Assembly (NCBI RefSeq): GCF_003704095.1
Contig: NW_020846501.1
Span: forward strand, 496,001 to 560,000
Direction of reading: 5' to 3'
DNA from: Pocillopora damicornis
Taxonomy: Eukaryota
DNA length: 64,000 nt
Positions 1 to 48,249 of the stretch are shown one piece after another. The position numbers and the translations under genes are program-made. The notes under the pieces were generated by a model, which searched no databases, was not told the origin of the DNA, and saw only the letters and a program-made list of their open reading frames with translations. Positions within the stretch are counted from its first letter, which is position 1; each line of letters opens with the position of its first letter.

Positions 1-3000
1 AGCCAGAATTCCAACAAGAGCTTAGCAACAGCGATGTCTTTGTTGGGGATACTGTATACTTTACTGTCAAGTCAAGGGGCATACCGGAACCGAAAGTCTC
101 ATGGTACAGGAACGGAGAGCTCGTGAAGGAAGACTCTCGAGTGAAGTTTATCAAAGATTCGCAGAGTGGAAACTATTCCCTTCTTATCAACAAAGTGACC
201 GTGGAGGACGAGGGCGAGTATCGTTGTGTGGCTTCCAACATGGGGGGATCTGTTGCCTGTCAAGCAAAACTTTTGGTTAAAGGTAAATGTCAAAGGGTAA
301 TGTGCATGGTGCCAAATCATAGAATTTTGTTTTGGGGTTATGTGCCTCAAGTATTCCTCAAATGATAATTCGTTGAAGTTTATGATGACTTTGAAGAGAC
401 ATTGTATTAAAATTGTCTTTTCAAAGACAAAATAAAGACGCTTCTGATGTTCGGTAGCACGTCGACATAACTCAGAATGAACAGACATGGAATAGCAAGT
501 CCGATGTTTTTATTGAAATTTTTTATTATATCCAATGCAAACAAATGTCGTGTTAGTGAAAGAAACTGGACCAGACCTCCATTTAGTGACTGAATATTGC
601 ATTTGCTTTCCCTCAGGGCATAATCAAGATGAAGCGCCTTCATTCACAGCGCCGCTGACCGATCGCTCTATCGAAGATAGCAGTGCAGCTAGGTTTGATG
701 TGCGTGTGCGCGGAAAACCTGCTCCAACAGTCTCTTGGTATAAAGACGGAAAAGAGATCAGTGATGAACAGTTTCCACACATCAAAGTTTTGCAGGAGGA
801 AGACTTGTTCTCTATTCTGATAACAGAAGGCAAGTTTGAAGATGCTGGAACGTATAAAGTGGTCGCCAAAAACGTTCTGGGAGAAGTGTCTTCTACTGGA
901 ATGTTATTTGTTGAAGGTGTGTAAGGTAGATTGTGTAGTAACTAGGATTGTTTAAGATATATGAGAAGTAGGAGTACCTCAGAATTAGGCTGCGAATAGT
1001 ATTTGGAACTTTTTATTTCCGAGGAAATCATCTTTGCACCGCACAAAAACATGCAATTTTTCTTTTAAAAATTACCCGTACTTTCCAGACCACAATTTTA
1101 CAGTCTTGAGGAAACAACTGATACTAAGATGTGCAGCGCCATATAAATTTCAGCCCATTTCAGCACCTAAATTTGTTGATTATCTGAAAATTCTTTCTTT
1201 GAAGGGAAACTCTGCTCACTTTTTTATTCATACCCTTTAAGATTAAAGAAAGAGCTAATTCGTTTCCTTCATTTTAGGAGCCGATCAGCTGCCACCCTTT
1301 GCTGGAGGAAAACCTCCGCGTAAGAACTCAGGCCTCTCAAGAGTTGAAGAGGTGAGAGTTTGATTAACCCTTTACACTCAACGTCAATATGCATATTGCA
1401 TATGTATACCAGTATATGTTTATCAGTATATGTCTACCAGTATATGTACAACGGTATATGTATATCCGTATTTGTATATCAGTATATGTTTATCAGTATA
1501 TGTACATTGGTATATGTATATCAGTATACATATTCACAATTCTGTTATTTTTACATTCCTTTTCTTGGCACTAGCAAGGAGAAGGTGTTTAACAGTTGAT
1601 GATCAGTTACTTTATTCTCATGACCTTAATGTTTGATTCAGGGCCGAGACTGTGTGGAGAAATTAGATGCTAGTCACCTTAAGGGGTTAAAGGGAAGAAG
1701 GAGTCGATATTCATAGATTAGGGAATTTTGAGAGAAGTTATATACACATACTAAATATTAGGTCAATCAGTGTTTGGTCCATAATTCATCTTGAGAGAAG
1801 ATTTCATCTTCCCTAAAAAAAAAAATTATTTTAAGTCACTGAAGAGTTATAGAAAACTTTAGTGCATAAATCTTTGTGAAGATAATACTTGGTTATATCA
1901 TAGTTTTATTCCCTCACTTGCTTCCCAGGTTCTGACGCTCAAGCTGTACACAGCCATTGAGGACTTCTATTCGGAAGAGACTGGAAACAAATTTCTTAAG
2001 AGGGGCGACAAAGTTGAAGTACTAGATACAAGCCGACCTGAGTTCTGGCTGGTCAGACGAGTGTCACGTGGGTCAGAGATTGGATTTGTACGTCACACAT
2101 GCCTGAAAAGAGACGAAGACGGGTAAGAGTACATTAAGATTGGTCACATGTTTAACTTGATTTTAGTTTTCAGCTTGATGGGTTATTACTGGCTTTCTTA
2201 GCGTACAAAGACGGCATATACGGCTCAAAAAGTTGCCTTGATGTCTTTCATTCGACTCATCACTAAGTCGATTTTCTCAGGATGATTACTAAAGCGGTGA
2301 CGGCCGTCAGTTAAGTTGCACAAAAATTTTGAATTAATGCAACTAATCGATACTTTACTTTTCAGGGATGAAACCACAGACGCACCGGTGATAGTAAGTT
2401 TTTTTAATTTCTCCTTTTACAACATGGAGATTGTTTTTAACTTTCTTCTTCCTTACTTTATTCTGATTTTAAAATTCATAAGTTTTGGCCCTTTTTTCAG
2501 GGAGAGAAACAAAAGTTTGTATGTATCACCAACTACACGGCCCAGTCCCCCGATGAGGTCTCGGTAAATGAGGGTGACATGTTAGAGATCCTTGACGACG
2601 TAGGCATGGAGAACTCGATGGTCTGCGTTATTCCTACCGGCGCCGTCGGGTGGTTACCAAGGGTCTTTATCATAAGGGCCCCTGAAGAGGATGTGAAGAA
2701 GGCCCCAAAGACTGCTAAAGGGAAAGAGAGGGAAGCACTTAATCAGCGAGAGTAAGTGAAGAATTGTTGAGAATGTTTGGTGTCAATTTCCTCCCTACAG
2801 TACAAATGAAGCTTCGAGAATTTTTCAATTATCTTTGATGGACTAAATATCTTACACTACGATTTGCTCTCATAGATTCGTGCTTAACGAATTGATAGAA
2901 TCTGAAAGGCAGTATGTTAACGACCTTCGAACTGTTGTTGAGGTAAGGAACAGATGACTTTCTATGAGTTTGATATCAAAGGTGATATGAATCCTGTTTA

Positions 3001-6000
3001 ACAATCAGTTAGTTTGGTGTGTCGGGGTTTTCTTACCTTAATAAATTACATCAACCAAAAGCTGTGCTGAGAAACACCTGTGATGCACAAGCATTTTATA
3101 TAGGCGTAATTGTTCTACCGGAGCTGCAGACTTCCGTATTTGATAATAAATTTTACCTTCGCTTAGCCCCCTCCCCCCTCCTGTATTTGCTAAATCTCTT
3201 TTTGTCGTGATTTGTTGTCACTGAATATACAAGAAACCGCTCACGTGAAGGATGATCTGTTTCGTGTGGTTTGTACAGAGTCACCTAGCTGAACTTGATG
3301 CTGCTGATATTCCTGAAGAAGTTGTTGAACATGAGGATGTTGTGTTTTCCAATATCAAGGAAATATACGGATTTCACACAAGGTATTAATTTCATGCTAC
3401 TCTTTCCTCTAACTCTCTCCGACTCACGTCATTTAATATGCCATTGCTCTGCTGCAATAGAATTACATATTTGTAGTCTGCGTGGAGTTGAACCGTTGAC
3501 TTTTGGAAGGTGAAATACGTCACAGTTAAGCATCCCGCTAAAACACTTGCTATTCGTTGTTTGTTATTGTCTCTCTGATGATATATCCATTCTTTCTTCA
3601 GACTATTCTTGCACGAACTGGAGGCTTGTGCAAAGAGTCCAGATGACGTTCCAAAGGTTATTGTACGACACGTAAGTTGCATTGCCGTAAAACATATGAA
3701 ATATTTTTAGTTAGTCTCTCTCCTCGACACTAAGTTATCTTTGTACACTTGGCTTCGTTATAACCTTCAATATGAATACGAGCAACATCTTGATTATATC
3801 TGTTGCTATTTTCGTGTAATTTTTAGAAACCAAAATTTGAAATGTACATCAAGTTCCTCGAGGGAAGGCCGCTGGCAAACGAAAAGCTGGAGAGTGAGAA
3901 AACGCAAGAGTTTTGGACGGTGAGTATTCCTCTTAAATAATCACTTTCGTTAATAAGATTTCATTCCGGTGGTTCACTTGTACAGAGATTAATTTACATG
4001 GATAATATGCGAAAAAAAAACCCACGCCAATTGCATTTTTAGTTTGAAGTACATTTAATGTTTTTAAAAAAATTTGAATATTAACTGTTTTTAAACTAAT
4101 GCTAGTTCACCTTTTTGCCGAATCTTTTGAACAATAATTATTCCAACATCAACAGGAGTTCCAAGAAGACACGAAAGATGCCATCTCTCTCTCAGAGTAC
4201 CTTAAAAAACCAGCACAGCGCCTTGATGAATACGTCCTGCATCTTAAGGTTAGAGAGAATGATCGCTAATACCTAGTACCTAACATTGATTTGGAGTACA
4301 GAAGTCTTTGCTAAGTTGTGCTGAGAGCCCCTTTTTCAAATACTTAAACTTTTTTCGTATTTTTATATACTACCTTCTGGTGCTGTTTTTATTTTTGTTT
4401 TTATTTTTTATAGTTATATATTTATATATTTTTTACGTCTAGTCTTTTGTATCGGTATGCATCCAGGCGAAGGGAAAATCGATGTACATTCTAAGCGGTG
4501 TTAATTTTATTTTTACCAAAGGAATTGCTCAAGTTCACTGTACGTGCGAATCTGCAGCATTCGGATTTTCAGGTAAGTCCCTTGTCTTTTTATTAAGCCA
4601 CAATTGACTCTGCCAAGATAAACCCAGTCAACGGTGGTTTCAATAGGACTAGAAAGAAATACAATGGTCATCACTAATCATCGGGACTCTTGCATAAACC
4701 TGATCACGTCGATAAGAGTTTAAAAGAATAATTAACTGTCGTATTCCCTCTGTCAGGTTCTTAACCCATCCCCTCACCCCACATCCCCCAATCCCCCCCT
4801 TCCTCGAAAGGAACATCGGTACGGAGGAGGGCATTGAACTTGTAAAGACCATACTTTTTACGTCTTCCAACGATTTGAAGTTCATAACTCCATTTTTTAT
4901 CTTCTCAACAGACGGCTCTTGAATTCCTAGCCAGTCTATCCCGACGAGGAAATGAAGCAGCACAAAAATTCCACATCGAAGGATATAATGTGAGTAATTA
5001 ACTCGACGCTCAAAAAATGCGATTCTTGAACTCCCCCGATCAGTCACCACCACCTGTGCAAACATCTACATCTTTCTCCTTTCACTGTGTGTATGTATTT
5101 TTTTTTTCTTTTTTTTTGCAAATATAATATTTATCCATGGTACTTATGTCCCACGTTCGTTTGCATTGTGTTAAATTTTTTTTTCCGTCACTGACTAGCT
5201 GACCAACAGAACGACGAACGGATAGACAGACCGACTGATGTATTGACTTACTCACTGACCGTCTGACGGACAGCCTTACTTGATTCACAAGAAAATTATC
5301 CAATGTTATTTCCTTATTGGTTTATTTGTCAATCTGCAGGGTGAGGTTCCTCTTGAAAATCTAGGGAGACTAATCCGCCAGGTAAGCTTCGTAAAGACCT
5401 TCATATAAATCTTCTCTGTTTACATGAAGTATTGAAGATGTTGTGCGTCTTATTTTGCAGGAGGTGGTCTTATTCTGGGAAGAGAAAGCTCGAGGAAAAG
5501 GAAAAGAACGGGACTTGTTCTTGTTCGAGAAAGGAATCGTCAACACGAAAAGAAAAGAAGGAGGAAGAAAATTCATCTTTAAAAACATGCTGAAGGTTTG
5601 ATATAACGACTGTTTGAACTTTCAAGTCCCCATCGATATTTTGTCCAACAGGTTACAAATAGAAACAATTAGAAACAAGGCCCGAGCCATGCTGTAATCA
5701 CAACCCTTACTTTGTTTTACTTTTCCGCTTTCATCCTCTTCGTTGTTTTTTATTTTTACTTGCTATAAGGTTGATCATAAGATTTATTGTTGTAATTTAA
5801 GAACTGAAACTCATTCCATCATGTGTTTAAGTAACTACTTGATAACACGGTTCTGTTGTCGTTCATTAAAATTGTCACTTAATAAGCCACACTCTTATTC
5901 TTTAGCTGACAAGTGGTAATGTTGGTCTGACTGAACATGTTGAAGGAGGTGCCCGTCAGTTCATGGTGTGGGTGGGTACCTCCATGGCCACTGCTCTTGT

Positions 6001-9000
6001 ACTTCACACATTTGAGGTAAGATGATAAAGCTGCTTAGTAAATATTGTTCGAGGGAGAAGGCCAAAACCGTTTATTAGTCATGTGTTGTAATCGTCTGGG
6101 TTAGGGTGGTCCTGAAAAGGGCTCTTGATGGTTACTGTGCCTGAGAGTTCAACATCTTTAGTGGAAATTTTCGTCAGTGTTAAGTGAAGAGTCGTTTGTA
6201 AGTCGAAAGTGATAGAGTTTTACAATGATTTTGTTGCACTCACAATGCCTCATCTAAATACAGAGCCTTTTTTAGAACGATACCAAGAGAATATGAGCAT
6301 TTGTGTCAAGTCTTAGGTGGTGCGAATTTTTTTTAATATAAAGCTTCTTTATTTACCCTTGCCTCTGTTATTTCAGACGAAGACCGAGTGGTCCAAACAG
6401 GTCTGGGTTCGTGAAATCAAAAGGCTGTTACATCTGAGTGAAAGTGAGTTCAAGTTTAAAACCTCTATTTTATTTTCGTTTCTTTTCGTTTCGTCGGCTC
6501 ACATTTCGTTTAACTCTCTCAGAATCATTAAACACTGCTGTTACACCATCTCTGGTGTTTGGTGAACTTGAAGTTCAATTGCCAAGTACTTCAGCCACAG
6601 AAGGGAACCTGGTGACCACAGTCAAAGAAACTATCACTAGTCCCTCTTACTCGCGTTTGATCGCTGAGCTCGAAAAACAGTATGTGGCCATCACACCACC
6701 GGACTCACCTGAACCTCAAAGCCTGGTAAGTGAAATGATACAATATCATCACGTGACGTAGTTTTTTGGTTCGTATCCTGCTGCTTTCCTCTTCTCTTTT
6801 TTTAAGTAACATAGGAACCTGCCATTCGCTCGTTGCATTTTCAGGGATAATTTAGTTGCATACTGGGGCTGTTTGACTGATTGGGTGTGGTCCCTTTCAG
6901 CACATTTCTGTTATGGGAAATGTTCTGTTTTACAACGTGGTCTGCCTCAGTGGGCCATGGGGAGGCGTGTGCTTGTCAGCTGATCACTGAAGAGGTTGAA
7001 AAATGCAATGAGGAGCTCATGTTCACGTGTGATTGTTACTTGTAGAACATTCAACTAGGAGGCACCTACCACTTGTCGGAAGAAACACTGGAACGAGATA
7101 CACGCGAGCGCGTAATCGGCCGCGGTGAACAAGTACGAGTGCTCCGCTCAGGCCGAGATCTCTACTTCGTGCAAACCGTCAAAGATGGAGAAACCAAAGA
7201 GGGCTGGGTTCCTGGAAGCTGGTTGCTAGAAAGAGGTTTTGACGACCAGATTACAGGCGCCCAAGTCCAGGTTGAGCTGGAAGCTGGTTTAGAAGATGAT
7301 ATTGCACAAGATTTGAGTTCAGAAGCGTCTGAACCGGAGCTGCAACGGCTCAAAGAAACTGGGGAAGGTAAATAGCTTTTTCATTGATATCTCCAGCCCA
7401 CGATTAGATAATAAATACAAATGAGTGCAGGTGATATTTTCTTAACCTTAAGATATCTAAGTAGTAGTAATCTTAAGTTTAAGCGCTTTTCGATATATCA
7501 GGCAAGTCTGCACAACGTGACCTGCCGGCCAAAAATAGCTTTGATCCCCTCACCTTGTTTCTTTGTCTATTTCCAAACAAACACTAAATACTGAATCAAA
7601 AGACGTAAAAAAAAAGTTTAAGCCAGCTCTATGGTCTCTCCTTTCTCCAGTCACGCTCGTCGAGGTATTCTTTGTTTAAGGATTCAATTACAAATTCAAA
7701 AAGCTTAATCTTAAATTGCGATGATTCTTGACAATTTCTACTCATTTTGAAGTGATACATAGTGGTGTTCTTAAAGTATTTTAAAACTTGGCTCGACTGT
7801 CGCTCTTGGAACATTCCAAGGATCCCGCGACTCCGTGGGATGGTTTATGATAAAAGAAATCAGTAAATTTTAAAACAGAAAAATCACAAGACTTCAATTG
7901 CAGGGTACTTTGAAACGCTAATGCGGCAATCAATTTAAGCGTTGTTGAAGTTATTGTTTCAAACAATAATATGCTTTGTTAACATCCTTATTCTTCGGTC
8001 GCGTCTCGTTGGTTCAGAATTACTGGGAATATTAATTATGATAATTCTGTTTTCCATCTGCAAGTGATTAATGCAGTGGAATTCACATCGCTCATCGGTG
8101 GAAATTACATATTTATGCTCTATTCTCGAAAGGGTGTTATTTGATTCAAAATAATTGTGTTAGTTGGAGTCACAGTACATCATTTTAATAAAGGCGCGAA
8201 CTGTTTTCGGATTGAGTCGGCTTTCAAATGTCTTCACGGTCAACTCTTTCGTCTTCGCGGAGTTACGGGTCTTCATCAGCTTCTGAAACTCGATCATACG
8301 AAAGGACATCGCGAATTCGTGAACATTCGGCGGACGATCGAAACGAAGGGCGACCGAGAAGGCGACGAGGTAAAAGAGATGCAGTTATTTTTTGTGATTT
8401 TTCTCGTTGAAAACGTCTCTAGTTGAGTATTTTGGTAGCAGTAGGTTCTGAAGAAAATAGTTTCTGAGAGACCTTGACTTTCTTGAATTAATGGCGCGGA
8501 CATCCAACAGTGACAACCAGGATTTTTCCAATACTGTATTACTTATAGGATAAAGTAAAGTGATAGAATGCAATTCTAATTTACCATCTTTTGAACTTTT
8601 TTATCTGCAAACTAATTTGAATTCTGATTAAGTCATTTGCAAAGGTAAGATATTGGACAGATATTGGACCACTCAAACATAAAACAAAGTCGTTTGTAAC
8701 TGTAAATATCACTTCTACCCACAGCTCAGCCAAAGTTTACAGAGGAACTTGAAGATATCGAAGTGTGTGTTGGCCAACCTGCCAGTCTGCGCTGTCGAGT
8801 GGAAGGTGACCCTTTCCCGGACATAGAATGGTTTGTAGATGATGACAAAATCAAGAAAGGGGGAAGATTCGATTTTCTCAGTAACGGAGACCTTGTTACT
8901 CTGAAAATTTCCGAAACAAGTGCCGAAGACGAAGGAGAATACAAATGTACAGCCAAGAATGAAAACGGAATGGCTACCACAAGTGCCGAGCTCATAGTAA

Positions 9001-12000
9001 ATGGTAAGTCCCTTATCCGTCAAACTGATCTTTGTATTCTTTGCGGTTTTTTTTATGGTTGACTGATAAGTGTCGTCAAAATTTTTCCTGTCATAGAAGT
9101 TATGATGAACTCATAGATACGCTATACAATAATTATTTAAAGCGCAAATAGTGTCGCAGGAATGTACACGGGTTATTTTTAACAAGCAAATTTACTTCAA
9201 AGCTCGGTAATTAGGGTTCAGTTATTAGTAAAATTTGGTCTTTACATTTTGATTGCTCTTCTCACGATACTTCCTTCTGGATGCAACATGGGATCAATCG
9301 TTCCAAAATTGTACATCAACGTTAGTATTTGTGCATGCTTCTAAATCATTAGTCAATAATTGAGGTCAATAGAAATGCTCCATTTACTCGACCAGTGTCT
9401 CTTTTGCTCCGCAGGCAGCCTTGGTTTTGTTTTGACGTTTTATTGTTGTTTTTACATTTAAACGACAGTGAGCCTTGTTTTCAATCTGCTCGTTCTTTTA
9501 TATTAAGTGTTCACTTAATGCCCACACCACCGAGACTCTGAACTGAGTGGCAGGCTAATTTCTCATCCATGTGACAAGTACTTGGACGTTCGTGGTTTAA
9601 ATTTCAAGCATGTGAAGGTTAAGTTAAGCTCAACGGCAGGGTGCCTCGCTCATTAACATCAACATTTATTATGCCATGATTTCTTCACACGCAACTACTT
9701 GAAGAACTTAGCTACAGTTTATGCTTTGACTTGCGGTGTCGAGATGTAAAATACAACTGATATTACGTTACATTGTTGGTATAATTTGTCCACACGATTT
9801 GCCGTCTCCGGATAGTCGCGCCACCCTTAAAAGGAATGTTGATCCTTCTGTAGATAACTGTCACTCCCTTTGTTACATTCACTTTACATTATAGCCTCCA
9901 CCAAATTGCGAGGCTGTTCATTTGTTGGCCTAACAGTAGCTGACACTTAAGACCTGGCAGTATGCTGATGTTTTTCGGCTTGCGTGAGTTGCTACTTGAG
10001 ATACATTTCTCGTAAACAGCCTCTTTTGGTGACCTCAATGGAATTAAATCTGAAACATCTCCAGCAAATGTAAAGAATCAAATTTCCTCCAATAACTGTT
10101 TTTAAGTTTAAAGAAGGAAGTAAAACACTTATTTCCTCCATTTACACTCGTTATGTATTAGTTACCGTGATAAAATAGCGATTCGAGTGACGTGGGTTGA
10201 AATTAGCTGAACAGATCTGTGTTGTTGATATGTTTCTTGCGTGACATGCTAATTTGGCGGCATTCGTTCGGTCCTTTTATCTTTGGTTACCTTTTTTTCG
10301 GCAATTTAGATTCATTATACCAGCCTATCAAAATAAATAAATTACACCCCGTAATCATCGGTCAAAATCTCTTTAGTACATAGCACTGTTTCTAGCAGCG
10401 CGATTTTTTTTCTTTTCGATACTGTTATTTATCCTGTATCTGTTTTAACTGGAGGATGCCCACTAAGAAGTGTAAGTCATAGGTTGTCATTTTAGAATCG
10501 TGCTACAAATATGACATCAATCCATTACTTGAAAAGGTCACTTTTTACGTTTTAAATGGCGCGTTGTAAACACGATCGTTTGGATGATCATCTGTTCTTC
10601 ACATTCACAGTATAACCGACATTACTGCGTGTAGCAAGGGACAGGCTCAGCTCATTACAACCCACCAGATGAGACCTTAGTTTTTCTTTCAAAATGTGTT
10701 AGATTTGTGACATGACTTTTAACTTCTTTAAGGCTCGAAACAAGCCGTATGACAGTATCGACGAGTGTGGTGTATGTTGAAATGCAAAATTACATTTTCG
10801 ACTTTCGAGGGCTTATTTGAAAACATCATCACGGGAGCCTTAGAGGCTGAGGGGATAGCGCCGTTAGATGGCCGTCAGAAGCAGAGTGTGGTTGACGTGC
10901 TTTTATCAGGCGTTGCAAACCAAACACTCAGCGACCTTCGGTAGCTCTACTGTTACGAAATGACTGATCAGCCCTTGAAGATCTGAAGGAACCTTTCTGG
11001 CGTTTCATTTACGATTTAGCTTATGAACAATTTTATTTGAATATCGTGCTGATTTTTGACGGCTATGTAAGAATAGAAATGTAAGTATTTTCAACTTCAC
11101 TATAATGCAAGTGACACCAAAGTCTCCTCAACTGTGGTTCAGGTCTATTCAAAGATGTCTCTGTTCAGCTCGTCACTCATTTACCTATTTTCCAATGTTA
11201 TACGTCATGATAAAATAGCCTTGAAAATGTTAAACAGCCTAAATTCTGTTCGATGTTTTAACTTAACATTAATTTTTCATCAGGTGGTTTAAAATAAGAG
11301 TAGTAACATATCCAGACGCCTTCTTCCTTAATTTTAGATCATACATTCTGTTGAACTGGAGAAGATCACATCACTGGCTTCTACTAAACAGTAATAATAC
11401 CCATCCATCGTCGACTAATGTCAAGGCTTGTGTAGCATTGAAAAATTATTTTAATTTGTTGAACTGTTAGCTCGCTTACTGTATATTTGCCGTGCCATTG
11501 ATTAGGGAACCTCAGACTTTTCTGTCATTTTATAATTGTCAAGTTCCTGAACTCTTCATAAATCAAATTGACTTTATTTTGACTTGTCGATTTGATATTA
11601 TTTTTTCTTGCAATTTTTTTCGCGTTATACGATAAGATGAACATTCCACTCGGTTGACCTCGTACAATTCCTCTCAGCTAATTTGCTATGATGTCTTTTT
11701 GAAGTTTCTGATTGAAGTTTCAGTTGAAGTGATGATGATTTTGATAAGTTGGTTTTTAAGAGACAAAAGTGCTTTCCTATATTATTTGTTACCATTTGTT
11801 TATAATTTTATGGGTGATTCATTGTAAATATAATGAGAGGTTACGATAACTGGATAAAACACTTAACATGTTTTTTTGTTTTTTTAGTGTGATAATCGAA
11901 ATAATTGCATCAAGACAACTCACAAATCAGTCTTCATTGTGATTTTTTTCCTTTTCTCGCAATATAAATGTCTCATTCTACTCGAGATTTCTAAGAATTT

Positions 12001-15000
12001 AAATGCTTCTTCGCGTTTTAAGTCGACGATTCGTGAATTCGCACAATTGTATCAGTATTGTGACCGATGACATAATGATATCGAGACGTGAAAACGCGAG
12101 GAAGCGCGGGAACTGTTTTCATGGCTTCCAGACAAACTTTATTGTGTGATTTGACCTGCTGCGACTAATTCTTGCCTTCATACTTAAATTGTTTGCAATA
12201 AAAGTTTGGATTATGTCTATCAGTCAAAATTTCCTCTCCAGCCCATAGCTGAAGTATACTTGAGCAACACGAATACAATTATTACACAGTTGATATTTGG
12301 TTCAAGTTTAGTTTCCGTCTTCCGATGATAATTTTGCCTGTTTTACTTTCCAGCTCCAGCGAAAATCGACAAAGCTCCCAAGTCTCAAACGGTCAGCGTT
12401 GGGGATGTGGTCTCTTTTAAATGTGAAATTTCTGGAAATCCCGTCCCGACTGGAACTTGGTACAAAGGCAAAAAAGAGCTAAAGGATGAAGGAAGAGTGC
12501 TTATAGAAATTGAAGAGGACTTCTCCGAGCTAGAGATTGAAAATGTTGAAACTTCCGACGAAGGAGAATACATCTGCCTGGTGAAAAACGACTTTGGGGA
12601 GGACAAGTGCTCAGTGACTCTTACTGTGAAAGGTGGGAATGGTGTTTTGAGCCGAAACCAAGTTCTTCTTGTTGAAATCACAAATAAGACTGTAACCTGT
12701 TTTATGATTAGAGCCTGATGGAATCACCAACATGAGGAACGCGTATTCAGATCAAACTTTCCTTATCACGTGTCATGACTTAGTGATATTTTACTGTCGG
12801 AAATATGTTATGTGAGAGTTCGTAACTTGTGTATTATTTATGAAATATAAATGCCATGGAACGGAAAAGTACATTTTTTTTCGATTTTCATTTTCACTCG
12901 AGAGGTACAAGAAAAACTAATCTAATCTTGTATTTTTCATTTTTCTTCTTTTCAGTGGGAGGAGATGTAAATGAAAACAACATCGCTGAAGGTGGTGATG
13001 AAGGTGTAGCGAAAGGTAAGTAACTAAACGCTCGGAAAGGAAAAAAAAGACCATTCAGTCGCTATCCATTCAATGGTCATGCACAAGGGTTTCATCACAG
13101 ACTTTTGAGTTCGTGCCACCTGTTACAACAGGATAAACATTACTATATGAAGGTACATGTAATTAGATGTAGCTTTCATTTGAATGGTCACACACAAGGG
13201 TTTCAGTTTTGTTTTGGTTTTGTTTCGGATTTGCTCCGTACTAATGATAGTAAAACTCTTATGTTTCGTACCTATTAACACACTGTTACTCTATCCAGAC
13301 GATGGCGGTGATGGAGACAGTGACGTAGAAAGCAAAGACCTTGACCTTCCGCTTCGAGATCCAATCTCCCTGCGGACGGATAAGAAATTTGATGATGCAT
13401 ACGTTTCTCAGAAAGAACTGGGAAAGTAAGGTTCATTTCTTTTATCTCTATGTGGTCTTATTGTATTTTTATCATTTTACCCTGTGTCTGAATTTAACCA
13501 TGAAATTTTACGTCAGTGGAGTCAGCCAATCGTGTCTTCAGGTACAAACAAACGTACGTACTTGCAGTGAGATGGCAACTGTCTGTTGTGATTGGCATTT
13601 GCTTTTCCGAAGGACTTGGTTGTCCAATCGTAACATTGCAGGACTTTTCAACAGATAGTTGTAGAGTTTTATATTGAAGCTTTCCTCTTCTTCTGTCTCT
13701 TTCCTCCTCTCCGCCAAGATCTTCCTTCTTTTAAAATATTTACTATCTTTACTTCCCAGGGGTAAATTTGGAGTTGTCAAAAAAGTTAAAGAAAAAAGCA
13801 CCGGGACGGAATACGCCGCCAAGTTCCTAAAAATCACCAAGGAGTCAAGGGAAGAAGTTCTGGCAGAAATGCTTATCATGAATAAACTGCACAGTAAACG
13901 GCTGATCTACCTCCATGATGCATACGAGAGACCAAAGGAGATGATTATAGTCTTGGAACTGTGAGTGAAATTAGTTATTACAGTTATTCTGCTTACTGGG
14001 GGATAAAAAGTAGAGGATGGGGGAAACAAGGAAAGATGGTAACAATGCGAGAATGAGACCTAAACTTAGATAATTTTATTACATATTTCAGTTGATCTGA
14101 TGTTAATGGTTTACGAGAAATCGCAGTTTCTGTATTATAGGAATTTGAATTGTTGATGTCTTTAGTGAATGTCAGTATATTGTAATGAACCCGAACAAAA
14201 TACATTAAGATAAGTATTGTTTCTTTCAGCTCATTACTGAAAATGAATGAGAAGATAGTAAATATTGTCATATCTGTTGTGCCCTTTAATAGAATCTCTG
14301 GAGGCGAGCTGTTTGAGAAAGTCTGTAATGATGATAACTTAACTGAGAAAGAGGTTGTGCGGTACATGAAGCAAATACTGCAAGGCGTGGAACATATGCA
14401 CAGGAAACGTATTGTCCACTTGGATCTTAAGGTAAGGGGAATTTCCTAAAGTCATCTTAAAGAGCTGCATTAGGATTAAAGAAATTGAATTCAGTGGTCA
14501 CAAATTAATATTAATAAAAGTAATAAACAGTAACACATGAAAGTGCATTTCAGAAGCTTTCATTTGAACAGCCTCGTGAGCTTTATTAAAGTTTTACCTT
14601 CAGAGGTTCATACTAAAGTCTTCCCTTTCTACTTAGCCTGAGAATGTGCTTTGTGTGATTCGTCCTGATGGTAAGGAGGATCTTAAGCTGATTGACTTTG
14701 GAATGGCGCGTGTACTTGAGCCGGGCAAAACCGTGAAAGTGGCCTGTGGTACGCCCGAATTTGTAGGTAAGAAAACAAGGCATTTATAAGCTTAACTTAA
14801 TAACCTTAGTCAATAAGAGGCCATAGGAGGTAACCTCTCGATTAGACTTGAAATGAGTGCCATCCTGGATATTTCTACATTCCTGGTAGTTACTTACTCA
14901 AAATATTTCTCTCGTACTTTTAGCGCCCGAAGTGATCAGTTACGAAGCCATCAGCCTAGCCAGTGACATGTGGTAAGAATGATTCTTAATCCTTGTTTGC

Positions 15001-18000
15001 TTCATATAAAAACATGGCTGTGCACCATTATAAGGCTGGTACATAACTGATCTAAGGTGTCCCTTTTTTTCTTTTTCTGTTTTCTTCTGCAGGAGTGTGG
15101 GCGTCATAGCATACGTTTTGTGAGTATGATTTTTCTATTTTCCCTTTCTGTCTTAGCTCATCCTTGTATTGTTAAACATAACTTTTCAAGGGTGATTTTG
15201 TATGGTTACGAGTCTTTCAATTGTTGCTTCCTTTTCTTCACCTGCCTAAAATACAAAAACGAAGTTAGGTAGTGATGTCAGATTGTCACTCAATTACAAT
15301 GTTATCTTTTCTAATTTTTTTAAAATCCATTTTACAGGCTGAGTGGTCTGTCACCCTTCATGGGAGACGATGACAACGAGACCATACAGAACGTGTCCAC
15401 CGCTGAGTGGGATTTTGAAGACGAAGCTTTTGACGTCGTGTCAGACATGTCCAAAAAGTTCATTGAGGAACTGCTCATCAGAAGTCCCGAGTCAGTAATT
15501 CTAAATAATTCTTTATTTCATTTCAAAGTCAACTTAACAATCGATACCATGACCACGAGACGTGAGTTCACAATCTCGAACATGAAAGAAAGGTCCGCTT
15601 AAAAACTTCCATATTCAGGAAGCCTGCATATCTGCATCGTTTTTTACGTGACGGTGATATTTTGGCTATAGGTTTATCAACGTTCGAGCAGATTGGGAAG
15701 GAGTTCACACACCTAAACACTTATTCCGTTAGAACAATATTTCCATAAGCCTAGAAGTGTTGTTACAGACCCTATCTTCATGATGTTACCTAGCTAATGG
15801 ATATTTGGTATTACATTCTTAGGAAGAGAAATGATGTTTTCAATTGTATGAACCATGATTGGTTGAAGGTAAGAGAGCAGATTTTTTGCTTGTAGATTCC
15901 CGTATCTCATGTGTATGTCATTGGAATCTTAAGCCTCCGTCTTTCCGCTCCCCCCTCCTCCTCTGCTATTACGGTTCCATTTTTCCGTTGATAGGATAAA
16001 TACCCGTCTAGTACGCGCCCGTGATTTCTCTGCCTTGGTAGACCCTCAAAACTTACAAAAATTCGCTATTATCCCACCTTAGGCGGGACAACTTTTACAA
16101 GCTTAGTTGCTGTCGTGCTCTCCATTTAAACTGTAAAAGTAATATAAAAGAATTAAGTCATTGTTATATTGCGTAAAACTTAGAAAGCAACTTCACGGGC
16201 ATTTTTCTTTTAAGATATACTTATCTTTTACTTTCTTTTCTTTTCCCTAATAGAAAGTCAAAACAATTAGGGCTCAGAAGCTCAGCACGGAAAACTTGAA
16301 GAAATTTATTGCGCGCCGTCGTTGGGCGGTAAGTGTCTGTCAATTTTCAAAATTGTCTTTTCAATGCGTTAGGTGATTATTTTTGTAGTGTTTGGGGACT
16401 GATAGTAAACTACATTCTCGCTCCTCTTTAGTTATGTCAGTCCTTCATTTTGACTGCTTGTTTCCTTACCCCACCCCCCTCCTCCACTTCGTATATCACT
16501 TCATTTTCTCACCCACGAAGATCAGGCAATCTAGGCCAAAACACTTTCCAAAAACTGATCTGTTTTCTGTATTTGTTCCCTGTAGAGAACAGCGAATGCC
16601 TTGCGAGCTCTGAGCCGAATGGGATCCCTTGGTGGGCTGATGGCTGGAGGAGGCAAACCCGGTGGCGCAGCTGCCGCCTCTAAACCTGGTGGCTTCCTCA
16701 AGAAGGTAAAAGAAGAGAAGGCCAAGGAGGAAGTTCAGGAGAAAGCAGCCAAAGCGGAGACGAAGAAGGAGCCATTCAAGGAGGAGGTATCTAAGGAGGA
16801 TCCGAAGAAATTTTCAGCAGGTGATAGCCTCATACCAGAAAGACGGGGCCTGAGTTATTCGGGTCGCCGAAGTCCCGCCTTGAGTGGCAGGAGAAGCCCG
16901 ATGTCTCGGGCAGAAGCCCGTAAGTATAGCACTCCTGATCCACGCGTTGTAATCACGTTCGTCTGGTTTGTGTTGTGTTGTCGATCGCCATTTAACATTG
17001 CATTATCTTAACGGGAGTACCGCTGGGCTATCTCGTCCTTCCTTCTTACCGCCTTTTTTTTCGGGCTGAATCTGATCCTGTTTGCCACGAGGTATTATAC
17101 TTCAATCAGGAGCACTTAAATGGAACCAGCTTTTTGTCATGTTCACCGGCAGTCTGTTGTTCCAAGTGGGCCTCTCAATTTTCTTTCTCACTTGTCAGTC
17201 AAATTTCAGAATCCGCTATTATTTCAATCCGCTTTCTCAAGGCGCTTTTCTGAAAAAGCGATTTTTTTAAATCCGCTTTCTTCACTTCTTTCCACTGAGC
17301 TCTTTACAGTTGATGACAAAGCGATGACAGAAGACGCAAAACTCTTTTGCGCCTGACAGATTCGTATTCATCCCCTTAAAGTGCTGTTATTTTCTCTACA
17401 TTTTTGCTTATTTTGGAAATATGGTTCTTAAAACATTTGCTCTAGAAATCATCATTCCTTTTATTCTTACAACCACGTACTTCATCCAGATATTGTGCGC
17501 TCCAGAAAAGGTGACCCTGCCGGAACTGGTCGAGTGTGTTAATTTTTATTGAGAGAACCGCTGTGGATGGAACTTTGTAAGTGTTACAGTTGACTGTAGT
17601 CGTAGACGATTCAGGGGTAACATAGGCTCTATTCCGTGTAGGTTTTATGTCGCAGCTTTGTTTTTATTTTTTGACTCAAGAGTTCACGGCCGCTCTAGCG
17701 CATTAACCGTTTTTTATTTGTAACGATTACAATGTCTCCTTTTGGGGTGCAGTGACGTTGATATATGAATATCTCAAGAAAAATTTCAACAGCTAACACT
17801 CCCAGCTATATCGATTTTTTCAGTTTGGTTTTCCGGCACGCAAACTTAGCTCAGTTCTGCCAAGTATCAACACCAGTTCATGACGACTTATAGTGCAGTT
17901 AGTAAAGGTCACATTTAATATCCGGTCTGTTTTCCTGCATTTCAACCTTCACTTGAATCACTGTATATTTTTTATTGGATTATCCATATTTAGCTCTGAA

Positions 18001-21000
18001 GGTTATTTTTACACATCCTGATAAAAAGCTGTTTTTTCTTCTTTTAATCTCGGATAAAACCTGTGAATAAATGTCTTGATATAAAGTGCTTGTGGCGCCT
18101 CTGTGATTCCTTCCTAATACTTGGAATCTAAGCGCTCTTATAACTCACTGAGCTGTTCGCCAGGTACTTTTTTAATCCAGAAACAACTTTTCGAGTGTAA
18201 CTTTTTTTTATCCTCGTTCGCTTTCAATTATACGACTCTTCGTCGAAAGAAGGCCAACAGATTTTGAAACAGTTTACTTTCTCTCATTACCTCATGACCC
18301 TCCGCATTTTTGTCTAATTACACTTAAATGCCAAGGTGTTTTTTTTGAAGACTGTTTCTGACAATAAGTAAAAGAAAAATTACTTCATAATGGTCTTATT
18401 GTTGATGTACTTTGACACTTAAAAAGTGTCAAATTTCATATGTTAATTGAAGGCGGGCGAATTTTTGTCGAAGTTTCGAGAACCTAATACATTTTATAAT
18501 GTGTCTGGTGCCAGTGAAGCCTTACTTGACGTTTGCGTGATCAATCTTTTTAACACAGAGTCAGTATTCACCCCCTAAAGAAACTGAAAATTTTCCTTCA
18601 TTTAAGCAATCATAACGTCTCGCGTGAGTTTTAAGCGGTCGTGGAGACTGGTACAGATGCTGTTATCAATTTCTGTGGTTGTTAGTACCTAAATTATTCA
18701 TTGCGCGCTGTAACTGATTGTCACTCCATGTGAAGTAATCATGAATCATAGCATTCTGTTGGCCAGGAGATTCTCTTCAACTCGTAAAGACATCAAAAGC
18801 ACCTTAACAGGTTCGTGTAAAGCGTGTAACTTTGCATTTAACATATAGAAACGTTATTGTCGGAACTACAAGTATATGTGGACAATTTTCGCTCAAACAT
18901 TCATCATAGCTATAACGTCCTCATCTGGCTCCCACCCGCGCTGAATTTAATGTGTATATTCCATGAATTATGCCTTTGAAATACTCTCTTAGTTGTGTTT
19001 CGTATGTGAACGTGTTTAGTTCAGTACTTTGAATTTTCTCTGTTAGAAAAAGCTTCACGCTTCTATCGACGTCCGTGAAATCATTCTGCGGCGTATCGTG
19101 TTAATAAGTTAAATGAGTAACATTTAAAGTTGTCTGGCACTACGTTTGGTAATCAAACGCCTCTCGTTACCCAGACTAAATTTTCGGAGCTTTGTGGTTG
19201 TGGCAGAAAAATGACGATTGCCTACAAACGTTAATTTTTTTTTCCCGTCATCTATTTCATCTTACTCTGTAAGAATAATGATGATGCTTTTTAAAATGTC
19301 AAATATTTTCGTCCAGTTCGGAAAAGGGTTTTCCTGAAGATAAAAGTGTCTAATTACATGTCAGCTGTGTTGCATTCCTTGGGTTGCACGATGTAACTCT
19401 CTTTCATAATCGAGAGTAAGATGTCAAGTTAGTTTATTATGTCGGCTTATGATTTCCAATGCTGTTTCTTTTAGTTGGAGATAATCTACGTGCTTCTGTT
19501 CTTCTCTCTAATATTTCCGGTTTTCATATCCTGTTGACGTGCTCTACATTTTAGGGTGTTGATAGGGCTGCGATGTCTTGAGAGAAAGTTCTCGTTTACT
19601 TAAGACCTGTTTCATAATTATTACATGAAAGGCGCCCTCTGATTAGTTTGCATAATTCATTTGACCAAGAAAATGTTTAATTGAATTTGATTCCATTTGG
19701 AAAATGTTTTACTTATCGTGTTGTGTGGAATAATAGTCAAACCCTGGCCTGTCACGTTGTGGGAAAGAAACACACTGATAATATTTACTTAAATCATTCC
19801 ATTGTTTTTCAGTTTGTTTATTCTTCACTTTTATCTGTCTACTTTCATCAGCGTTGTCTTTTGTTTGAAGTAGATAAATGCCTGGGGGTTATCTCGAGTG
19901 CTGTTATCGCAATAACGTCCTTGGCAAGATTTCTGTTCTGCTCTCTGTTACTCCCAAAAAAGGTTTTCTTGTTCTTGTTCAGTTTGTTAACTCCTGAATA
20001 CTTTTAAAAGGAGTGCACTGCTTCTCTTTTAGAGTATAGATGCTTTTTTTAATATTTTGTGAAATCTCATTGATGTAGTCGCTAATTATTCCAAGCTGCT
20101 TAATTTCGTAGCATGTGGTGTTTTCTATAAACACGTCACATTTTGTCACGTCAAAAATCTTTGAGTGCTGTATAATGACCAGTTCACTTTCAGATAGTTT
20201 ATTTATTCTCCTAAATGTTCCTCTTAATTGGCATCTTCATTTAGTGTTGAGAACTTGGTGGTGTATCCTAGCAAACTTTTGTATTGCGCTTGCAACGAGA
20301 AAGATAACTGGAAAAAAAAAAGATCCTTTTTCGTTAAGTGTGGGAAACTGTGCCCACGATTTCCTCTCTTTTTCCTTCTTTCACGTAGCGATGGTTGCAA
20401 TGCAATCCTATTTCACTTTGCTTCCTGACTTTCTTAATTCCTACATGATCTGAACACCCACGCGAACACGTGGGTCAAACGCTTAGGGAAATGCACCTAT
20501 TTATCTGACTTTTAATCCTTGACTGATACAAAAACTTTTTTTTATTCTTCTAACGCGCTGAAATTGATAGTATTGATTTTGACAAAATGTTCTATAGTCA
20601 CTGTACGGACCAGACTGGAGCTGTGGTTATTCTCTCTTTTTGAGCTGGTCAGAGGTCATAAAACACATCCTTTGTGACCCACACATCAGCATCGAAATCC
20701 TTCTTAAATGATCTTTTTCTGTTACGAGTTGTTTTATTATGGTATACTTGTTTCTCTGTGTTCATCACTACCTTTCTTCCTATTAATTGTATGTTTGACC
20801 TTGTACCAACTCGGTGAAGGGAAATTAACACCTTTTTCTTCTTTTAATTCGTCCAAGAATGAATGTCGTGGGTTGTTTCCTGTATGTCTTGCTTTGAGAA
20901 ATAACGTGAATTTTACTTCCCCTCCAAAATCGCCTTCTCTCCTCTACTTCACCCACTCCTTGTCGCGCTTTGTCGCGCCTTTTCCTCCCTTCAAATTGAA

Positions 21001-22835
21001 ACTGTTTCTGGAGCCACTTTTGCTGAGCTTCTCGTGACTTTTCTCCCCTATGTCTCTGAAGTCTCGCGTTGACCACGTGTAACTATCACGTGTTTGTTTC
21101 TTTAAGCCCAATCAGTACTTGCCGCCATACGTGCCATTGTGTAACACACACGTATCCATTGTTAATCATTCATCTTATTTCCCATGTAGATGGTATGCCA
21201 CTAGGCCCCCCTGTCTTCATTCAACACCTGACGAATTGCGAGATCATAGAGAACAGCGCCGCCAGATTTGAATGTAAGGTCAGCGGTAACCCTGAACCGG
21301 AAGTGGAATGGTATAAAGACGGGAAGCTACTGAAGGAAAGTAAACAACTCACATTCCTGTACGATGACAACGACAACTGCAAACTTATCATCACTAAGGG
21401 CACAGCAGCTGACGCAGGCGAATACATGGTTGTGGCCAAAAATCCTCACGGTAAAGTATCGAGTAGTGCACGATTGCTTATCGACACGGGTTCAACGGAC
21501 GATGAAACCGCGAGCGAGTCCGAACTCTCCGAACTGTCTGGCTCTGAAGCTGAGGAGAGAACGATGACCCCAAAAGAGGAAAAGATCACGAAGTACTACA
21601 CTGTTCAAGATGAGCTCGGCAAGGGACGGTTCGGTGTTGTGTGCAAGTGTATTGACAATAAAACGGGACGCGCTTATGCCGCCAAGTTCATCAAATGTAC
21701 TGCGCCCAAGGACAGACAAGACGTCATACACGAAGCAGAGATCATGAGTTCTGTTCGGCACAGGCGGCTCCTTCGGCTTCAAGATTTCTTCCAGACACCC
21801 ACAGAGATGATACTCGTCATGGATCTTGTCACGGGTGGAGAGCTGTTTGAGAAGGTGGTAGAAGATGAGTTCATCTCGGAGATAGAAGTGTCGCATTACA
21901 TGAAACAGATAATGGAAGGTGTTCAGCACTTGCATCAGCGAGAAGTTCTCCATTTAGATCTCAAACCCGAAAACATCATGCTTATTAGACCGGACAGTAA
22001 ACAAATCAAGCTTATCGACTTCGGCCTGGCGAGGAAGTACAACCCGAAGGAAAACCTTAAGGTTATGTTTGGAACACCAGAATTTGTTGCCCCAGAAGTC
22101 ATTACATACGAGCGTATTACACCTGCTACGGACTTGTGGTCCGTTGGAGTCATAGCATATATTCTGCTGAGTGGTTTATCGCCGTTTATGGGGGATACTG
22201 ATGCCGAGACCCTGACGAACGTCCAACTGGCGGAGTGGGACTTTGACGATCCTGTCTTTGATGATATCTCAGATGAAGCTAAAGACTTTATCAGCGGTCT
22301 ACTTGTGCTTAAAGCAAACAAGAGGAGTACTGTCGATCAATTACTCAAACATCGCTGGTTCACTATCGAGAAGGGCAAAGGGAAAAAACTGAAGACCGAC
22401 CGTCTCAAAGCGTTTACGGCGCGAAGGAAATGGAGGCGAGCCATCACTGCGATCCGAAGCACGAACTTTTTGAGCCGGATTCTCGGAAGCCGAGGGTCCG
22501 ATGATAAGAAGAGTAGTGGGGGTGGAGGTGGTGGATTGTTAGCCCGAGTCAAAGCAATGCATGCTGCCGGTATTCAAGGTTCGGAAGGAGGTGTTCCCCC
22601 GGCGTCCTCTCCTTTCCTATCACCTGCCTCAGCAGCGTTCAGCACCAGTAACAGCTTCACTTCGGTAACTGTAACAGAAAGAACGCAAACACAAGGAGAG
22701 ACAACTGTTTTAGAGAAGGAGACAGTGACTGTTACCAAAGACGGACAAACAACTGTTAAAGAAAAAGAAACTACAACAAGAATCGGCGAATTCAAGCAGC
22801 AAGATAGCACAACAGAAGAAGTCGATAATGGTTAG
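1..22835 (+). CDS. Obscurin/UNC-89-like giant muscle protein, 5'-partial: Ig-Ig-SH3-SH3-RhoGEF(DH)-PH-SH3-Ig-Ig-MLCK kinase 1-CaM segment-telokin-like Ig-MLCK kinase 2-CaM segment
   Basis: Frame-consistent GT-AG exons: <1-282 (Ig), 617-916 (Ig), 1278-1351, 1929-2122 (SH3, LYTAIEDF..FWLVR..IGFV), 2366-2393, 2501-2751 (SH3, GWLP), DH 2876-2942 (VLNELIESERQYV), 3279-3382, 3602-3671, 3827-3919, 4156-4248 (YLKKPAQRLDEY), 4522-4572, 4912-4989, PH 5340-5381, 5461-5595 (KERDLFLFEK), 5906-6016, 6377-6443 (KQVWVREI), 6523-6725, 7046-7367 (SH3, EGWVPGSW), Ig 8725-9003, Ig 12354-12632, 12956-13015, kinase 1 13299-13425, 13760-13960, 14293-14431 (HLDLK), 14637-14766 (PEN, DFG), 14924-14972, 15093-15119, 15338-15490, 15823-15868, 16254-16328 (KKFIARRRW), 16586-16820/16919, terminal exon 21190-22835. 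Confidence 0.88.
1364..1696 (+). mobile_element. TTAA-flanked MITE (family 1, piggyBac-like) with internal minisatellite
   Basis: Begins TTAACCCTTTACAC and ends GGGGTTAAAGGG; internal sequence is shared with the copies at 27499-27804 and 60695-60869. Confidence 0.7.
1397..1535. repeat. 14-bp minisatellite (CAGTATATGTWTAT), about 10 copies
   Basis: Units start at 1410, 1424, 1438, 1452, 1466, 1480, 1494, 1508 and 1522. Confidence 0.9.
5190..5283. repeat. Degenerate (GACT/GACA)n microsatellite
   Basis: actgactagctgaccaacagaacgacgaacggatagacagaccgactgatg... Confidence 0.65.
8228..8369 (+). CDS. Candidate alternative first coding exon (MSSRSTLSSSRSYG...) for a short Ig-Ig-MLCK isoform
   Basis: caaATG at 8228 with an in-frame TGA just upstream (8213-8215); 47 open Ser/Arg-rich codons; phase-1 donor G|gtaaaa at 8369 compatible with the phase-1 Ig exon at 8725. 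Confidence 0.6.
17310..17356 (+). CDS. Candidate alternative terminal exon (xDDKAMTEDAKLFCA*) giving a single-kinase isoform
   Basis: Pyrimidine-rich acceptor ttcacttctttccactgagctctttacag|TT is phase 1, matching donors 16820/16919; open to TGA at 17354-17356; AATAAA at about 18066. Confidence 0.5.
21190..22835 (+). CDS. Intronless terminal exon: telokin-like I-set Ig + complete myosin light chain kinase domain + calmodulin-binding segment + Thr-rich tail
   Basis: Part of ORF 21069-22835. Acceptor ttcccatgtag|AT at 21190 is phase 1, matching the phase-1 donors at 16820/16919. Motifs: ENSAARFECKVSGNPEPEVEWYKD, LGKGRFGVV, YAAKFI, HLDLKPENI, IKLIDFGLA, GTPEFVAPE, LSGLSPFMG, RLKAFTARRKWRRAITAIR. 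Confidence 0.92.
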
Positions 22836-47910: not shown

Positions 47911-48249
47911 CATAAACTTATATAATTGTATGCACTGTTATATATACTTATCAAAGACAAGAGTGATTATGAAACCAAACAGATTTCGTGAACTAGCCGG
48001 GGATCAAGGGGGTGATTGTCCCAAAGATTCAGCCTCCCTTTCATGACTAAATATGCCTCGTTTTGGTTACAGTATACGGCTGTAATGGCGGAGGTTTATT
48101 GTCTCTAACTGACAAGATATGTTCTCTGATTAATTTTCCCCCATAGCTTGAAGTATACTTGAAGGATACTTTTTATGGCGCCGTATACTGAATTTTGTGG
48201 TCTTAAGCTCACTTAAATCAAAGTGTTGGACGCTATTGAAGTGGATAAA

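Follow-up and report, generated by a model that had tools for sequence, protein, structure and literature searches.

The 64,000-nucleotide stretch of Pocillopora damicornis DNA analysed here (plus strand, G000:C3136:496001-560000; hereafter, the window) holds the 3' third of the giant, muscle-type connectitin gene. Read along the window, the order is a guanine nucleotide exchange factor (GEF) module of SH3-SH3-DH-PH-SH3 composition, two immunoglobulin-like (Ig) domains, a first kinase (kinase A1) followed by a calmodulin-type segment, a further Ig, a second kinase (A2) followed by a second calmodulin-type segment, and a third kinase (B); the coordinates are collected in Table 1. Here we show that the GEF exons and the exons of kinase A1 sit on the same transcripts, that an internal exon also starts transcripts at the Ig-Ig-kinase A1 part, and that kinases A2 and B share transcripts. 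We put at about 85% the probability that this is the Pocillopora orthologue of cnidarian connectitin, seen here in its 3' part, a single giant gene on the plus strand that measures about 95 kb and belongs to the Trio/obscurin/titin/MYLK family.

Connectitin has been described as a protein with SEC14, more than 10 spectrin repeats, many Ig domains and a central RhoGEF/PH/SH3 region, which in corals and sea anemone ends in three C-terminal kinases (Hanashima et al. 2025, J Mol Evol 93:306, PMC12198301). In the published tree, kinase A groups with the kinases of titin and MYLK and with obscurin kinase A, and kinase B with obscurin kinase B; the authors suggest that MYLK split from connectitin in the bilaterian ancestor, and regard OBSCN proper as missing from cnidarians (PMC12198301). 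An original prediction, made from the letters of the sequence, had presented positions 1929-22835 as an obscurin-MYLK chimera and had missed the third kinase, which is of obscurin kinase-2 type. Because the RhoGEF/PH/SH3 region and the three coral kinases have already been described as connectitin (PMC12198301), the locus is not a new obscurin-MYLK chimera; the architecture is published, and the Pocillopora gene is a further member of a described gene. The same publication makes no mention of calmodulin (0 occurrences), regulatory segments, internal-first-exon isoforms or exon structure. The details that are new here are the two calmodulin-type segments, the internal first exon that gives rise to an MLCK-like (myosin light-chain kinase-like) isoform, a splice that skips the stop at 22833 and a second kinase exon free of introns.

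The limits given in the original prediction proved too narrow on both sides, as the gene begins at least 65 kb upstream of the window and runs to the third kinase. In the 100 kb of contig examined upstream, SEC14-like and spectrin-like exons are followed by a first DH-like exon, an SH3 and a long Ig array. Between 457.6 and 496 kb of the contig the array comprises 33 Ig-like open segments, every one on the plus strand; one exon contains 14 I-set domains by itself, and Pfam recognised five further I-set Ig domains in the window. Helical repeat exons precede the array; one spectrin repeat scored just below the cut-off (E 1e-6, 29.6 bits against 29.9), and weak matches were obtained to Spectrin_SESTD1 (E 0.046), CRAL_TRIO_2 (E 0.079) and spectrin (E 0.16). 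One upstream exon has a DH-like start, read by eye, and a weak Kalirin-type SH3 was also detected upstream. Whole-genome scans, which covered the assembly of 234 Mb in 4393 contigs, missed the locus with both RhoGEF and CRAL_TRIO_2, the latter giving no listing on this contig, because the exons are short. A 9.6-kb RNA contig (run X2) terminates at 7367, and the transcript therefore extends far upstream of the window. One protein encoded by the window clusters with RMX39400.1 of P. damicornis. The public open reading frame (ORF) calls that were inspected fragment the locus, with kinase A2 appearing as a 546-amino-acid ORF and kinase B as a 358-amino-acid "hypothetical protein", and the exon junctions found here would correct them.

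All the domains that had been listed for the GEF module and the kinases are present when Pfam is run per exon, the third SH3 being weak; joined spliced models were compared by local scripts only, rather than in search tools. Pfam RhoGEF fragments lie at 2847-2954 and 4138-4266 and correspond to profile positions 1-22 and 116-149. The local spliced model from the Ig at 617 to the end of the PH at 6443 encodes 577 amino acids, is free of stops and uses GT-AG introns only. It aligns in one piece with an amphioxus obscurin-like protein (E 3e-73), with a Saccoglossus protein (E 3e-69) and with residues 5181-5804 of opossum obscurin (E 3.5e-45). SH3 number 3 is 41% identical to residues 1694-1758 of the amphioxus obscurin-like protein P0050, where Pfam reports SH3_2/SH3_KALRN. 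For SH3 number 1, an acceptor at 1882 appears more likely than the 1929 of the original prediction. The Ig exon at the left edge of the window, the last but one of the long upstream array, probably begins further upstream. In the intron before SH3 number 1, positions 1519-1694 are taken up by an interspersed repeat of about 175 bp that has more than 40 copies in the genome at 73-87% identity.

Evidence at the RNA level came from Logan contigs of four runs (X1, X2, X8 and X9), from four studies, which were aligned to 7200-13199. The joint 7367->8725 was found in X1, X2 and X9, and in the fourth run, X8, a 7.4-kb contig ends at 7367 with a loose end made of the first 11 letters of the 8725 exon. 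Further downstream, the joint 9003->12354 was seen in 4/4 runs and 12632->12956 in three, and in each of the four the loose end past 13015 matches the beginning of the 13299 exon. The predicted splicing of the GEF module to kinase A1 was thus borne out at 7367->8725 and at the joints that follow it. A 2636-nucleotide contig (X9 record 23) contains the exon of SH3 number 3 and both Ig exons, together with 569 nucleotides upstream and 1340 nucleotides downstream; the exons between 12957 and 16919 add up to exactly 1340, and therefore the contig most likely spans kinase A1 and its calmodulin-type segment and stops at the 16919 donor. Two weaker signals lie in the 3.3-kb intron between the Ig exons, namely low-depth RNA contigs that begin at 11730 (+) with foreign upstream letters in 4/4 runs and a rare joint 10471->12354 in one run. 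Both may represent minor alternative exons.

The internal first exon was covered from 8030 to 8369 by an X9 contig, and the depth of X8 over it was above intron background. In both X8 and X9, loose ends past 8369 match the 11 opening letters of the 8725 exon, and phase 1 fits this acceptor. The original prediction had flagged a start at 8228, which as the sole kinase start, with the 7367 donor unused, would have spoken against it; the start is real, with RNA in two runs, and it is an alternative one that yields a GEF-less, MLCK-like isoform beside the GEF-containing transcript.

Kinases A1 and A2 are both intact, as had been predicted, each with its G-loop, AAK lysine, HLDLKPEN, DFG and APE motifs. 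Pfam Pkinase pieces of kinase A1 were found at 13665-14446, and the exon of kinase A2, open from 21060 to 22832, carries an I-set domain and a complete Pkinase (E 2e-74). A local spliced model from the Ig at 8725 to the end of kinase A2 is stop-free over 1180 amino acids with GT-AG introns only. The nearest solved sequence to kinase A2 is human MYLK4 (2X4F, E 3.5e-88). In the AlphaFold model of kinase A2 (predicted local distance difference test score, pLDDT, 86) the regulatory segment forms a long helix at residues 268-298, and the best superpositions were with DAPK-calmodulin complexes, autoinhibited CaMKII and twitchin.

Kinases A1 and A2 are each followed by a 1-8-14 calmodulin-type segment that retains a Trp and a basic cluster as well as hydrophobic residues at 8 and 14. 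Both regulatory segments quoted in the original prediction are present as written and resemble that of smooth-muscle MLCK, the segment of kinase A1 matching human MYLK (P0250) at 18/34 positions in a by-eye count. The Trp is invariant in 39/39 homologues, with little or no variation in the basic residues that flank it. The segment is not exclusive to MYLK: the RRKW type is also found after kinase 1 of a vertebrate SPEG-like protein, in a SPEG-like protein of sea urchin and in the amphioxus obscurin-like protein, and opossum obscurin kinase 1 is followed by a weaker version. Two further Pocillopora loci, C3599:93959-104100 and C4052:256442-260600, encode A-type kinases with the intron positions of kinase A1 and an exon ending in AKRRWQ or AKRRWK. 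Since it occurs in SPEG-like, amphioxus, C3599 and C4052 kinases, the segment looks ancestral to the A-type kinases. The C3599 pair is orthologous to Nematostella "SPEG-like" XP_048590455, which has a kinase-Ig-Ig-kinase order and a terminal Death domain; being the orthologue of that other locus, XP_048590455 was dropped as support for a link between kinases A1 and A2. Introns interrupt the calmodulin gene of the coral, and its one available exon is without the last helix.

The stop at 22833, which closes the kinase A2 frame, is bypassed in RNA. A donor at 22830, three bases before this TAG, joins 25791 in spliced contigs of three runs. One of these, Logan RNA contig L010, matches the window at 99-100% identity across ten GT-AG blocks, and two further RNA contigs cover kinases A2 and B. 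Two longer members of the protein cluster of the 546-amino-acid ORF, encoded on such spliced RNA contigs, map to kinase A2, then to 25790-25954, and on through kinase B. For the 546-amino-acid kinase A2 ORF itself, the source contigs that were read are TARA metagenome scaffolds with prokaryote-style ORF calls; the public "protein" derives at least in part from such calls on genomic or metagenomic contigs, and did so in every case read. As the look-up of this ORF brought back calls of this kind only, it provides no evidence for a stand-alone kinase A2 gene. Kinase B shares with opossum obscurin kinase 2 a Lys-to-Arg change in the catalytic loop, and its homologous regulatory exon has neither the Trp nor the basic cluster. 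A fourth kinase domain at 32482-36569 (+) is a paralogue of kinase B, with 43% identity, the same intron positions, an HLDIRPAN loop and DYG instead of DFG. Its exon at 32482 opens with ATG, and it is probably a separate gene because it lies beyond the 3' untranslated region (UTR) of kinase B.

To place the kinases, quick IQ-TREE trees were made from 107-127 kinase domains taken from homologue searches, a set made up without DAPK, CaMK, Trio or Kalirin kinases. Kinases A1 and A2 fell in a 53-row clade (SH-like approximate likelihood ratio test, SH-aLRT, 99) together with MYLK of human, shark, Ciona, mollusc and echinoderm, an insect titin homologue and the kinases of the amphioxus and Saccoglossus GEF proteins. 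The bilaterian obscurin/SPEG kinase 1 groups lie outside this clade (branch SH-aLRT 99), which upholds the assignment of both coral kinases to the MYLK/titin side and agrees with the published opinion that cnidarians lack OBSCN proper. Kinase B and the downstream fourth kinase group with obscurin/SPEG kinase 2 (SH-aLRT 97-98). Intron positions and phases are common to kinases A1, B and the fourth kinase, with near-equal exon lengths in A1 and B, whereas the Ig-kinase A2 exon, unlike these three, has no introns.

The original prediction had placed the GEF module and both MLCK-type kinases in one polypeptide. Its first half stands on RNA; the second requires kinase A1 to be joined to kinase A2, which we infer to occur via 16919->21190 from splice phase and from the Orbicella RefSeq models. 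The donor at 16919 is a perfect GTAAGT, no other donor in that stretch has phase 1, this phase agrees with that of the acceptor at 21190, and the frame stays open after the join. In Orbicella, RefSeq isoforms X1 and X2 both make precisely this join, connecting the kinase A1 regulatory exons to Ig-kinase A2 and then to kinase B; the neighbouring upstream gene is an 11,601-amino-acid model whose range includes the kinase A1 N-lobe exons, and an assembly gap alone lies between the two models. The published coral and sea-anemone connectitin models also have three kinases in one protein (PMC12198301). The competing view is that of two transcription units, a GEF gene that ends after the kinase A1 tail at the stop at 17009 and a separate Ig-A2-B gene that starts from ATG 21195, in which case no polypeptide would carry two calmodulin-type kinases. 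Several observations weigh against our reading, and those on the contig end, the read-through peptide, the ATG and the Oculina model speak for the two units. The join 16919->21190 was not observed in the Pocillopora RNA contigs, and the long RNA contig halts exactly at 16919, consistent with a branch point. The read-through peptide RKYSTPDP (16920-17008, +) is kept among corals at about 70% overall identity, in ORFs from genomic-type contigs. In the 21190 exon the second full codon reads ATG, and P0333, a gene model from Oculina, begins at the Ig-kinase A2 exon. Further, the RNA evidence consists of assembled Logan contigs, in which the whole gene was not seen as a single molecule; Pfam gave no significant upstream match for SEC14 or the first DH; and Fn3, which precedes the kinase in the Ig-Ig-Fn3 order of MYLK, was not found beside the kinases, 12632-13299 holding only the acidic mini-exon. 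As to the function of the GEF part, vertebrate obscurin GEF domains are reported to have had no exchange activity in vitro (PMC10118190). The word searches also speak for two units in that neither returned an ORF bridging kinases A1 and A2: residues 1-160 of Orbicella P0299 gave no match to such an ORF, and the kinase A1 tail exon returned only donor read-through ORFs, as from genomic contigs. An exact-pattern scan of Joint Genome Institute (JGI) metagenome contigs with the 20 exonic bases before 16919 gave two chance matches. Set against the matching phases, the open frame and the Orbicella and published models, two separate units seem unlikely to us. The joined and the A1-terminated forms may coexist as isoforms, and the contig break at 16919 together with the conserved RKYSTPDP suggests that a form ending with kinase A1 may also exist.

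It is very improbable that the GEF-kinase transcript is an artefact of chimeric Logan contigs or of genomic DNA in the RNA libraries. Contigs rather than raw reads were used, and low-depth intron coverage points to pre-mRNA or DNA in the libraries, but the same GT-AG joints recur in runs of four studies at depths 10-100x the intron background, and the GEF-kinase joints are in frame and consistent with the Orbicella models. A different doubt concerns whether the A-type kinases respond to calmodulin at all, since they could be calmodulin-independent scaffolds or pseudokinases in which the RRKW segment is a relic. Drosophila obscurin kinase 1 (PK1) is such a case, an inactive pseudokinase that has lost calmodulin binding (PMC10129394, PMC12812942). 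The top fold matches of the kinase A2 model include Drosophila UNC-89 PK1, and the SPEG-like and opossum obscurin kinases 1 that are followed by RRKW-like segments are not known as calmodulin-regulated. The catalytic motifs of kinases A1 and A2 are nevertheless all intact, the Trp anchor is invariant and its flanking basic residues nearly so across the 39 homologues, the nearest solved sequence is that of human MYLK4, and both kinases belong to the MYLK/titin clade, outside the obscurin PK1 groups. We regard the relic explanation as rather improbable.

Read as connectitin, the Pocillopora gene can be compared with several known systems. With published connectitin it shares the many Ig domains, the central RhoGEF-PH-SH3, the three kinases and the same A/B kinase grouping; the published work concerned Acropora and Nematostella. 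In Pocillopora, SEC14 and spectrin repeats are only weakly detected. With obscurin/UNC-89 it shares an SH3-DH-PH of the Trio subfamily within an Ig-rich giant, collinear with opossum obscurin over the residues named above, a kinase B of obscurin kinase-2 type including its Lys-to-Arg change, and kinase isoforms from internal starts, as in obscurin-MLCK. It differs from obscurin in having three kinases instead of two, with kinases A1 and A2 outside bilaterian obscurin/SPEG kinase 1, two SH3 domains before the DH and one after the PH, and no Fn3 beside the kinases. Likeness to MYLK lies in the Ig-Ig-kinase-regulatory segment-Ig order, whose last Ig stands where MYLK has its telokin Ig, in nested promoters within one locus, in the 44-50% identity of kinase A2 to vertebrate MYLK and in the shared 1-8-14 anchors of the segment. 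In contrast to MYLK, the coral kinase lies in a giant GEF gene, is duplicated and is then followed by a third, distinct kinase, and no actin-binding repeats were identified in the coral gene. The order SEC14-like, spectrin-like, GEF1, SH3, GEF2, Kalirin-type SH3, Ig, kinase is that of Trio/Kalirin, but more than 30 Ig segments separate the coral GEF modules, and the coral gene has extra kinases. Nor is the combination of a GEF with an MLCK-clade kinase unique to the coral. The "obscurin-like" models of amphioxus (XP_078621722) and of the acorn worm Saccoglossus (LOC100378837) combine Ig, SH3, RhoGEF, an SOS1/NGEF-type PH, a Kalirin-type SH3, Ig and an MYLK-clade kinase, that of amphioxus likewise with a calmodulin-type segment. 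Pfam recognises the RhoGEF, the PH, the Kalirin-type SH3 and the kinase in both. These are bilaterian, predicted models with a single kinase each, for which we found no experimental work.

Control of cnidarian muscle by Ca2+/calmodulin and MLCK is accepted in the single-cell literature. From what is known of the family, kinases A1 and A2 may be autoinhibited by their C-terminal helix, as in smooth-muscle MLCK. Binding of Ca2+/calmodulin to the W-x6-(L/I)-x5-(M/L) segment would release them. Once free, they would phosphorylate a substrate, either the regulatory light chain of myosin or a neighbouring one. In the long isoform, this kinase activity and a Rho-family GEF would sit together on a filament-associated Ig scaffold, which would unite in one protein the two arms of light-chain control envisaged in the original prediction, and the short, GEF-less isoform would act as a conventional MLCK-like enzyme. 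Calmodulin release, light-chain phosphorylation and Rho activation are all extrapolated here from family knowledge. What RNA does establish, in a reef-building coral, is the production of one protein that carries both a Rho-family GEF module and a calmodulin-type MLCK-like kinase, beside which the locus yields an MLCK-like isoform that lacks the GEF. These findings support the idea, already published, that one Trio-like giant gene gave rise to titin, obscurin and MYLK. The two regulatory peptides and the defined junctions provide reagents for work on the coupling of Ca2+/calmodulin to myosin phosphorylation in troponin-less cnidarian muscle.

A more speculative evolutionary scenario, which we offer tentatively and think doubtful as a whole, takes the coral MLCK to be a nested connectitin product of Ig-Ig-kinase-calmodulin segment-Ig composition that starts from the exon at about 8030-8369. 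The nested-promoter layout of vertebrate MYLK/telokin and of obscurin-MLCK would then predate bilaterians, and connectitin would have split at an internal start of this kind to give bilaterian MYLK. The intronless exon with Ig and kinase A2 would have been gained later, among anthozoans, perhaps as a retro-inserted copy.

Table 1. Exons and domains of the connectitin gene within the window, with the evidence for each.
Feature	Position	Strand	Evidence
Ig (I-set) exon	3..282	+	Pfam I-set 3-362, E 4e-24; phase-1 donor 282 from local splice scan
Ig (I-set) exon	617..916	+	Pfam I-set 517-921, E 2e-18; GT-AG ends, open model
SH3 number 1 exon	1882..2122	+	Pfam SH3_2 1863-2123, E 4e-5; aligns to SH3 of P0050 and P0055; acceptor inferred, donor read from sequence
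28-nucleotide linker mini-exon between both SH3 exons	2366..2393	+	Inferred as sole phase-compatible GT-AG path; model stays open
SH3 number 2 exon	2501..2751	+	Pfam SH3_1 2441-2752, E 1e-5
DH (RhoGEF), seven exons	2876-2942, 3279-3382, 3602-3671, 3827-3919, 4156-4248, 4522-4572, 4912-4989	+	Pfam fragments and collinear alignments
PH, four exons	5340-5381, 5461-5595, 5906-6016, 6377-6443	+	Pfam SOS1_NGEF_PH 5428-5598, E 2.5e-10; tblastn against P0050 and P0055; open model
Ser/Thr/Pro-rich linker exon(s)	6520..6760	+	Open frame 6438-6758; 67 phase-compatible splice solutions between 6443 and 7046
SH3 number 3 (Kalirin-type, weak)	7046..7367	+	Pfam SH3_2 7046-7372, E 0.009, below cut-off; donor 7367
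Alternative first exon, ATG 8228, Ser/Arg-rich 47-amino-acid leader	8030..8369	+	Spliced 8369->8725, GEF-less isoform
Ig exon A	8725..9003	+	Pfam I-set 8706-9059, E 7e-26; RNA joints either side
Ig exon B	12354..12632	+	Pfam I-set 12332-12715, E 1e-25; RNA joint 9003->12354
Acidic mini-exon	12956..13015	+	RNA joint 12632->12956 (three runs); loose end to 13299 (four runs)
Kinase A1 (kinase 1), eight exons	13299-13425, 13760-13960, 14293-14431, 14637-14766, 14924-14972, 15093-15119, 15338-15490, 15823-15868	+	Pfam Pkinase; GT-AG open model
Kinase A1 regulatory segment	16254-16328, 16586-16919	+	1-8-14 calmodulin-type motif, then Lys/Glu/Pro-rich tail; phase-1 GTAAGT donor 16919
Intronless exon: Ig 21210-21479, kinase A2 (kinase 2) 21597-22361, calmodulin-type segment ~22380-22484, Ser/Thr-rich tail	21190..22830	+	
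Kinase B (kinase 3), obscurin/SPEG kinase-2 type, nine exons	25791..29332	+	Stop 29330-29332; 3' UTR to at least 29685

Beyond the connectitin gene, tandem repeats of about 240 bp at 30289-31780 lie on either side of an assembly gap (N run) at 31348-31447. A simple repeat of about 1 kb at 38439-39443 (+), with SQSVSQS-type runs in all three frames, is probably non-coding. Further along, 42158-45642, 48217-53218 and 58494-59621 (+) resemble by eye exons of a PIG-A-type GlcNAc transferase, a beta-1,4-galactosyltransferase and LSm5.

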